A stretch of 64,000 bases of DNA, taken from NCBI GenBank assembly GCA_964304625.1, contig OZ199838.1, forward strand, positions 13,211,843 through 13,275,842, in the 5' to 3' direction. This DNA is from Kudoa neothunni (Eukaryota; Animalia; Cnidaria). The translations under genes were made by a program, and so were the position numbers. Positions 30,488 through 31,790 of this stretch are shown piece after piece. Under the pieces are notes generated by a model. That model did not search any database and was not told the origin of the DNA. It saw nothing but the letters and a program-made list of their open reading frames with translations. Each line of letters opens with the position of its first letter. Position 1 is the stretch's first letter.

Positions 30488-31216
30488 ATGTTGCTGACAC
30501 TTTTTAAACGGTAATCATAGTACATTAAACTTTCATGAGGTTGCTTAGAGGTATTTGCGATACGAAAAAGGTTTCTAGTGGAGCAATGCCGTTTGAATAC
30601 GATCCAACAAAAATTGTGTACGCTAATCGAAATCTCATGAGTTTAGAGGACATAGGCTACATGCGCCCGAGAGGTTATAATAAAAATGAAAAAACGATGC
30701 CAGTTTTTTAAAAGGTAGTTTCCGTGATTATTGTTCTTTTAATTTTTATAAGAGCTGAACTCAATATCTCAAATCGTCACATAAGAGCGCGAGTTTTTCA
30801 TCAACTTTCTCAAAAGGTTTTAGCTTCCGCATCCACACTGGAATTTGGCATAAGAAAATACCTTTCGAATAGTCTCACCAATATGGATGCTGTTATCCTT
30901 GTGGCTAATGTGTTGGCATATCGCTGCATGAAGGCTGGTGTAATGAATTGTTACTTTGAGATGCTCAACAAAGATGAAAACGAACGTTGGGCGGCATTTA
31001 AACGACAACTTAATGCTAATGGCATTGCTACTAGCGAGCCGGAGTTGGATCTACCATTAGAAATTTCAAAACCCTGTATTTGAAATGTTGGACTGGTTAA
31101 TTAATTTTTTCGGGATTTTAGACGAGAAAGAATACTATCACGTATATGGTGAATATGGTCCTATATCCTACTACAAAAATATGATTTATACAAAAAATCG
31201 TGTTCACTCGATTTAA
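30488..31216 (+). CDS. MRPL18: Mitochondrial ribosomal protein uL18m (frameshift in exon 2 as assembled)
   Basis: MLLTLFKRG presequence-like start, ANRNLMSLE..RPRGY, then KVLASASTLEFGIRKYL...VLAYRCMKAGV...GIATSEP, matching the MRPL18 family. One extra base near 30682-30694 puts TAA (30709) in frame. Confidence 0.85.
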
Positions 31217-31368: not shown

Positions 31369-31692
31369 TAATGTAGCCCAAAAGTCTCCATTGCCGAAAT
31401 TTCAGCGACAAGAAACAAAATGGGCGTCAATATATTGAGAGTTAAGACCACGCAATTTAATTAGTTGTAAATTGCGCTTTGAATAACTCTCAACGTTGTG
31501 AAGGCGTTGGAGAGGGAGTTTGGTTTAAGTTTACAACTACTCACTCTTGAGACAAACTCACCGAATAAAACAACCCAAGAGTTAGGTGCAAGGAGTAGTT
31601 TTAATATCCAAAATAATAGGTTAGGTTAGAGATGCACGGGTTAAAGAAATGAAGCATTCAGCTACATCGCCTCTTACCCGCCCAACGCCTCC
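31369..31692 (-). ncRNA. TERC: Candidate telomerase RNA (animal H/ACA type) with TTAGG template
   Basis: Manual fold. P1 31692-31682 pairs with 31510-31500 (11 bp). P1.1 31681-31636. Template CUAACCUAACCUA 31629-31617. P2a 31600-31593 with 31542-31535 (8 bp). P2b 31582-31574 with 31551-31543 (9 bp). U-rich loop UUUUAUUC, then P3 GAGUUUG (31559-31553) with CAAACUC (31522-31516). Long stem 31493-31435. 3' hairpin with UGAA loop followed by ACA (31374-31372). Confidence 0.8.
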
Positions 31693-31790
31693 GGTAACAC
31701 GTGCACGAAACTTTCTTATTCGTAGGGACCCTGACGGGTGATTTCCGATAATTCCCGGAAAATAATAATGTTAAGATTGGTCCAGCAACG
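31693..31790 (-). promoter_or_regulatory. Putative promoter of the telomerase RNA candidate
   Basis: Minus strand shows CCAAT (31780-31776) and a PSE-like TCACCCGTCA (31742-31733) about 50 nt upstream of P1. Motif resemblance only. Confidence 0.35.

Follow-up and report, generated by a model that had tools for sequence, protein, structure and literature searches.

Features of the locus

The window, a 64-kb stretch of Kudoa neothunni DNA, contains on its minus strand a locus of some 325 to 335 nt that lies downstream of MRPL18, on the strand opposite to that gene, and that is predicted to fold into the parts of an animal telomerase RNA (Table 1). BLAST of the genome found the locus in single copy. 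Folding of the minus strand from 31700 to 31369 gave a minimum free energy of −106.8 kcal/mol with z = −7.23, compared with z = −3.15 for the plus strand, a strand asymmetry that one would expect of an RNA containing G-U pairs. Sequences with the appearance of promoter elements precede the first helix, and no USE-like element was noticed when the upstream region was read by eye. Several internal runs of at least four U are present in the RNA, as they are in its orthologue described below. Runs of four or more U terminate polymerase III, and transcription by polymerase II is therefore probable. Searches against Rfam returned no telomerase match, neither for the window at gathering thresholds nor for 1.8 kb at permissive thresholds, and the family RF00024 had no match anywhere in the genome.

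Two protein-coding features of the window may be recorded here. Between the stop of the MRPL18 ORF (31083) and the 3′ end of the RNA sits a short coding exon that is conserved in a second species. Its peptide pattern, DE.EYY..GEYGPIS....MI.TKNR...I, ends at a stop, and the exon is possibly the real terminal exon of MRPL18, possibly a small gene of its own. In addition, an uninterrupted ORF of 1622 aa lacks Pfam domains; no homologue of it was detected among 5.8 billion proteins, and no contig encoding it was found elsewhere.

Table 1. Positions of the putative RNA gene, its predicted parts and neighboring coding features in the window; L045 is the contig of the second Kudoa-like species
Feature	Position	Strand	Basis or remark
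CCAAT motif, promoter-like (putative)	31776–31780	−	read from the sequence; position not conserved in L045
A/T-rich TATA-like element AATAAGAAA (putative)	31712–31720	−	about 25–30 nt upstream of P1
Putative telomerase RNA gene, about 325–335 nt	about 31369–31705	−	fold, single copy and syntenic orthologue; both ends predicted
P1 closing helix, 5′ strand	31682–31692	−	pairs with 31500–31510, 11 bp
Template-proximal hairpin, P1.1-like	31637–31681	−	predicted independently in both species
Template-like tract CUAACCUAACCUA	31617–31629	−	single-stranded in the centroid fold; same 13-mer in L045
P2a/P2b hairpin with conserved U-rich loop (pseudoknot stem 1)	31535–31600	−	16/16 pairs in both species; P2a 31600–31593/31542–31535 and P2b 31581–31574/31551–31544 in the fold
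P3 5′ strand GAGUUUG, within the P2b loop	31553–31559	−	complementary to 31516–31522
P3 3′ strand CAAACUC, closes the pseudoknot	31516–31522	−	complementary to 31553–31559
P1 closing helix, 3′ strand	31500–31510	−	pairs with 31682–31692
P5/P6-like two-stem hairpin, at the CR4/5 position and 5′ hairpin of the H/ACA domain	31435–31493	−	folds
9-nt hinge CUCAAUAUAUU with box-H-like hexamer AUAUUG	31428–31433 (hexamer)	−	hinge conserved in L045
3′ hairpin of the H/ACA-like domain	31376–31425	−	folds of both species
ACA followed by UUA, predicted 3′ end	31369–31374	−	AUA-UUA at the same place in L045
Last large MRPL18 exon	30757–31080		query of the HMMER search
Short coding exon	31119–31216	+	L045 4458–4545 (+)
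ORF of 1622 aa	39119–43987	−	uninterrupted

Conservation in a second Kudoa-like species

Exhaustive HMMER searching with the last large MRPL18 exon led to one protein (P0001, 62% identical), whose coding sequence lies on a Logan contig (5.4 kb) from run SRR31175926. This contig, L045, represents a second Kudoa-like species. Word-based protein searches with the MRPL18 exon, the 1622-aa ORF and P0001 yielded no further relatives. On L045 a counterpart of the RNA has the same placement and orientation relative to MRPL18 as in K. neothunni, and synteny is partly kept around it, with a UBQLN1-type match upstream of MRPL18 in L045 and a UBA-domain ORF in the window. When 5 kb was compared with L045 by BLASTN, only the MRPL18 coding sequence, the small coding exon and the template/pseudoknot core aligned. 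The core, at 31537–31629, was the most conserved intergenic block (77% over 93 nt); the promoter, the template flanks and the distal stems could not be aligned between the two species. In L045 a TATAAA is found about 30 nt upstream of P1.

Folded alone, the L045 RNA adopted the same architecture with z = −5.97. It comprises P1, a 5′ hairpin, a 7-nt linker, the template-like tract, P2a/P2b, P3 (AGUUUG/CAAACU), a two-stem hairpin, the hinge CUCAAUAUAUU, a last hairpin and A-AUA-UUA, and its P2b loop, GUUGUUUUAUUC.GU.AGUUUGUCUCAA, is nearly identical to that of K. neothunni. RNAalifold analysis of the two sequences gave 33 pairs for the core, seven of them with compensatory changes and none broken, the sole non-pair being a gap at the end; the 3′ domain had 19 pairs with five compensatory changes. 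The two sequences thus differ by 12 compensatory pair changes with no pair broken. With the pseudoknot included, 97.7% of the cells pair, against 34–57% when the partners were slid by 1–3 columns. The shuffle control, which is weak with two sequences, reached the observed score in 62 of 500 shuffles.

The changes are spread over several helices. P1 is kept in both species with two compensatory and two one-sided changes (RNAalifold), and P2a/P2b with three compensatory changes and a one-sided one. P3 can form 6–7 bp in both, with a conserved sequence and hence without covariation, and the strand order of P2 and P3 is the canonical one for a telomerase RNA pseudoknot. The linker between the template-proximal hairpin and CUAACC measures 7 nt in both species, and the folds suggest that this P1.1-like hairpin is likely to be the template boundary element. 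At the position of CR4/5, both species have a plain two-stem hairpin instead of the canonical three-way junction with P6.1. The latter stem-loop is absent, since the 3′ internal loop between P5 and P6, with 6 nt in K. neothunni and 5 nt in L045, is too short to hold it.

The layout of hairpin, hinge, hairpin and tail is also conserved between the two species. At the box H position L045 has AUAUUA, in agreement with the consensus ANANNA, whereas AUAUUG in K. neothunni is one base off. The closing helix of the 3′ hairpin changes from GCCCA/UGGGC to GCCAA/UUGGC in L045, which is a compensatory change. The AUA that L045 carries in its tail is a tolerated natural variant of the ACA box. As to the proteins expected to act with such an RNA, a TERT RNA-binding-domain exon was located at C2:7023017-7023364 as the only match found, and genes for dyskerin (DKCLD) and GAR1 are present in the genome. 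An exon-wise genome search with Pfam Nop10p gave no match for NOP10, a short gene that is probably split by introns and was missed for that reason. The existence of a TERT gene in the K. neothunni genome is also stated by Weber et al. 2025 (PMC12239612).

The template-like tract

The plus strand of the tract reads TAGGTTAGGTTAG, that is, 2.6 units of TTAGG type as described in the initial annotation, and the minus strand reads CTAACCTAACCTA, 2.6 units of CCTAA. With at most one mismatch allowed, this was the sole match to the 13-mer in the window (0.03 expected), and 3 of 100 shuffled windows contained a match. Across the 40.26-Mb assembly the 13-mer had 11 matches at 8 loci, compared with 13 for a reversed-pattern control. 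The 13-mer by itself is not significant, its frequency across the genome being at chance level, and the case therefore rests wholly on context. When windows from −70 to +180 were folded by script, the locus described here gave z = −4.3, and the remaining seven loci were unstructured DNA with z between −1.3 and +1.3.

In L045 the corresponding tract, CCUAACCUAACCUAAC, is 16 nt long (3.2 units) and holds the identical 13-mer between diverged flanks. Because promoter, template flanks and distal stems have become unalignable between the species, the 13-nt tract is, judging by these two sequences, under selection. The orthologue, which comes from an independent assembly, also has two Cs per unit, and this excludes the assembly error in the C count that the initial annotation had named as a way in which its reading might fail. 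Its remark that a complementary tract of more than two repeats is long for a template is borne out by the 2.6 to 3.2 repeats found.

Telomere repeat at the chromosome ends

The assembly consists of three large contigs of 17.15, 12.04 and 11.05 Mb and one of 18,219 bp; the published curated assembly is described as comprising 40.2 Mb, with three chromosomes, a mitochondrial contig of 18,219 bp and an N50 of 12.0 Mb (PMC12239612). Contig 2 finishes at its 3′ end in 89 TTTAGG units, all perfect, whose G-rich strand extends to the terminus. This is the only terminal array, the other five ends of the chromosome contigs being unique sequence. The array (C2:12039138-12039537) directly abuts unique A/T-rich sequence, the junction passing from ...CAAACAAAGG to TTTAGG without degenerate or variant repeats. 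The assembly contains no (TTAGG)n of at least six units and no (TTAGGG)5; one interstitial (TTAGG)4.6 is present in the genome.

The published data point to the same repeat. Weber et al. 2025 observed (TAAACC)n both at the end of one chromosome and among the K. sp. trachurus reads (PMC12239612). According to their supplement, the assembly before curation had two scaffolds and an alternate contig that begin with 96, 88 and 60 instances of AAACCTAAACCT, the motif (TAAACC)n being found in 49 HiFi reads and on three contig ends (PMC12239612 supplement). For another myxozoan genome, that of Sphaerospora molnari, a preprint describes contig ends with [CYAACY]n hexamers and found TTAGGG to be absent. 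We therefore consider it very likely that the telomere of K. neothunni is TTTAGG. The telomeres of TTAGG type predicted in the initial annotation are contradicted by the terminal (TTTAGG)89, the published (TAAACC)n and the lack of (TTAGG)6 in the assembly: neither (TTAGG)n nor (TTAGGG)n is terminal at the contig ends, where another motif, TTTAGG, is present instead.

Mismatch between the putative template and the telomere

The template of the putative RNA lacks complementarity to more than a single repeat of the telomere in its own species, as only 7 nt of it, AACCUAA, also fit (CCUAAA)n. A TTTAGG template elsewhere inside the same RNA was considered and rejected, since only this AACCUAA and a UAAACC that is not conserved fit. 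By standard telomerase mechanics a template of CCUAA units can only give TTAGG, a 5-nt repeat; when the registers are worked through by hand, each round leaves a perfectly paired position for realignment on the 3′ repeat copy, and this always restores the 5-nt period. To obtain TTTAGG from a CCUAA template, a systematic one-base under-alignment or a slip on AA would be needed. Stuttering telomerases give heterogeneous repeats, whereas the TTTAGG array of K. neothunni is perfect. With chromosome ends of TTTAGG and a template of TTAGG type, the RNA as read therefore leaves the observed telomere unexplained.

Several ways out can be envisaged. A second template RNA that escaped detection is possible in our view, though we would not call it probable. 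A non-standard register, for example an obligatory one-base slip on AA, appears unlikely, and we judge in the same way the existence of TTAGG repeats that escaped capture. If the RNA described here were the sole telomerase RNA, a one-base shift or slip on AA enforced in each cycle would have to produce perfect TTTAGG, a reading that we hold to be rather improbable. To our knowledge, a rule by which a template of 5-nt period gives a 6-nt product is undescribed for any telomerase; if that slip reading were true, the relation of template to product would be new for telomerases.

Search for a second template RNA

No paralogue of the RNA was found by BLAST of the genome, by a genome-wide search for the conserved pseudoknot motif with up to three mismatches, or by a covariance model (R1), built from the K. 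neothunni and L045 core sequences, among the 150 of 7477 first-look candidates that were scored. Tracts of at least 12 nt were covered by a search for (CCTAAA)n, with templates of 8–11 nt and the phases TAAACCTAAACC, AACCTAAACCTA and ACCTAAACCTAA alone lying outside it. The inspected non-telomeric loci with at least 12 nt of (CCTAAA)n were coding, belonged to a repeat family or were unstructured. Matches to CCTAAACCTAAA were discarded as TTTAGG-type templates as they look coding by eye. Five matches to CTAAACCTAAAC were rejected as unstructured, one of them lying within a repeat family of about 210 nt with at least 24 copies. Eleven matches to AAACCTAAACCT were inspected, a set that omits about five on C1/C2 and about three unlisted ones; most fall in a gene family encoding KPKP, and the remainder lie in unstructured or coding sequence. 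The sequence AACCTAAACCTAA occurs in the genome in the telomere only. In two other candidate telomerase RNA regions a partial check at derived coordinates showed no (CCTAAA)n tract of at least 8 nt.

Three further observations were made along with these searches. The repeat family of about 210 nt, whose copies share 87–94% identity and have a GC-rich, hairpin-forming 5′ part, looks SINE- or MITE-like; the copy at C3:9416579-9416969 contains CTAAACCTAAAC. The gene family is clustered at C2:7.96-8.61 Mb, with a further site at C2:1.12 Mb, and its members share a conserved exon encoding ...YYEAD-KPKP..., which accounts for most of the non-telomeric matches to AAACCTAAACCT. Finally, C3:9706991 and C3:9724802, 17.8 kb apart, are identical over about 270 nt, which suggests a recent segmental duplication.

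Identity of the RNA

Taken together, the fold, the syntenic orthologue and the compensatory changes argue that the minus strand from about 31705 to 31369 is probably the K. neothunni orthologue of the animal H/ACA-type telomerase RNA. The proposal of the initial annotation that the tract is the template of such an RNA is thereby backed by architecture and by an orthologue with compensatory changes. That annotation had offered a non-arthropod lineage as the second of two alternatives, and this is the one that fits, the host being a myxozoan cnidarian. For the RNA itself, we infer transcription, the positions of its ends, binding of TERT and the use of the template. In the model that we propose, the single-copy gene is probably transcribed by polymerase II and P1 would close the template/pseudoknot core. 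The hairpin located 7 nt before the template would probably act as its boundary, the single-stranded CUAACCUAACCUA would occupy the template position, and the U-rich loop of P2b would pair with the downstream CAAACUC (P3) to form the pseudoknot. A simple two-stem hairpin appears to replace CR4/5, and the hinge, the last hairpin and the ACA with its three following nucleotides would recruit dyskerin-type proteins.

The mismatch between template and telomere would disappear if a second RNA with a CCUAAA template, so far escaping detection, made TTTAGG and the RNA described here were ancestral or paralogous, stage-specific or in another role. The second RNA would possibly be smaller and of a different kind, as in Lepidoptera or Hymenoptera; type switches and duplications of telomerase RNA are reported for insects (PMC9841428, PMC11892584, bioRxiv 10.1101/2025.04.29.651168). 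The small share of candidates scored with the covariance model and the restriction of the tract search to longer templates leave room for it. Yet the three paralogue searches and the inspected (CCTAAA)n loci brought up no such RNA, the RNA-binding domain of TERT matched only once, and a conserved 13-nt tract of TTAGG type amid diverged flanks would be left unexplained. We consider this division of roles between two RNAs unlikely.

The template that does not match the telomere, the absence of a telomerase family match in Rfam and the chance-level frequency of the 13-mer would also suit another conserved, structured non-coding RNA, for instance an H/ACA-like scaRNA with an extra domain, in which the tract binds something else. 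A tandem of CCUAA would then have been conserved, and extended, exactly between a boundary hairpin and a pseudoknot of canonical topology, all within a domain closed by P1 and followed by hairpin, hinge, hairpin and ACA. No other class of RNA known to us combines these features, and we regard a non-coding RNA of another kind as quite improbable. The count of the 13-mer, equal to that of the control, and the repeat-rich nature of the genome (PMC12239612) could finally be taken to indicate that the motif arose by chance in intergenic DNA without function or belongs to an inverted-repeat transposon. The locus is, however, single copy, its fold is strand-asymmetric, and it has been kept at a syntenic site with 12 compensatory pair changes although the surrounding non-coding DNA is unalignable. 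A chance motif or transposon, to which we give next to no credence, is effectively refuted by the orthologue, its fold and these changes.

The preferred reading of the locus as a telomerase RNA gene leaves a discrepancy, namely a conserved pentameric template alongside hexameric TTTAGG chromosome ends. Either the published motif is not added by telomerase, or there is a second template RNA, or the template is used in a way that has not been described. Each of these three outcomes would be informative on the evolution of telomere repeats.

Comparison with known telomerase RNA systems

With its approximately 300–335 nt, the Kudoa RNA falls in the size range of animal telomerase RNAs. The telomerase RNAs of cnidarians and other basal metazoans have a canonical CR4/5 with P6.1, mostly a CAB box, and TTAGGG telomeres (PMC8480181). 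The Kudoa RNA resembles those of cnidarians in its core closed by P1, its P1.1-type stem and the H/ACA-like layout of its 3′ domain, and also in being polymerase-II-like, without polymerase III signals (PMC8480181). It differs from them in that it has neither P6.1 nor a conserved CAB-like loop and in its template, which is pentameric, 13–16 nt long and mismatched to its own telomere. Logeswaran et al. 2021 described 26 cnidarians, with no myxozoan among them, and identified the template-proximal P1.1 stem as the ancestral boundary element (PMC8480181). In our literature search no telomerase RNA was found described for Myxozoa, and Weber et al. 2025 reported TERT and the telomere motif and no telomerase RNA (PMC12239612). 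The literature search suggests that the Kudoa RNA is the first myxozoan telomerase RNA, and the repeat that it predicts is one T shorter than their published (TAAACC)n telomere (PMC12239612).

Insect systems with TTAGG telomeres share with Kudoa a template complementary to TTAGG, in Lepidoptera (PMC11892584) as in Hymenoptera (PMC9841428). The lepidopteran RNA is tiny, degenerate and without the animal domains (PMC11892584), and the hymenopteran RNAs follow a plant/ciliate-like polymerase III biogenesis (PMC9841428), whereas the Kudoa RNA has the ancestral H/ACA-type plan. The internal T4+ terminators of the Kudoa RNA set it apart from the snRNA type transcribed by polymerase III, which lacks them. 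Terminal (TTAGG)n arrays, the arthropod-type feature, are not found in the K. neothunni assembly, and unlike these insect systems its telomere is not TTAGG.

The closest parallel for the CR4/5 region is found in the eCR4/5 RNAs of protostomes and echinoderms, in which P6.1 has likewise been lost and a plain long stem separates the core from the H/ACA domain (PMC8480181). These RNAs also use a P1.1 stem as template boundary element (PMC8480181), the one of Kudoa being predicted from the fold. The protostome and echinoderm losses of P6.1 are bilaterian, in contrast to that of Kudoa, which would be a further, independent loss within Cnidaria. Together with its orthologue, the Kudoa RNA indicates that the ancestral animal telomerase RNA plan has been retained in a genome that ranks among the fastest-evolving of animals; if confirmed, it would also add another independent loss of P6.1.
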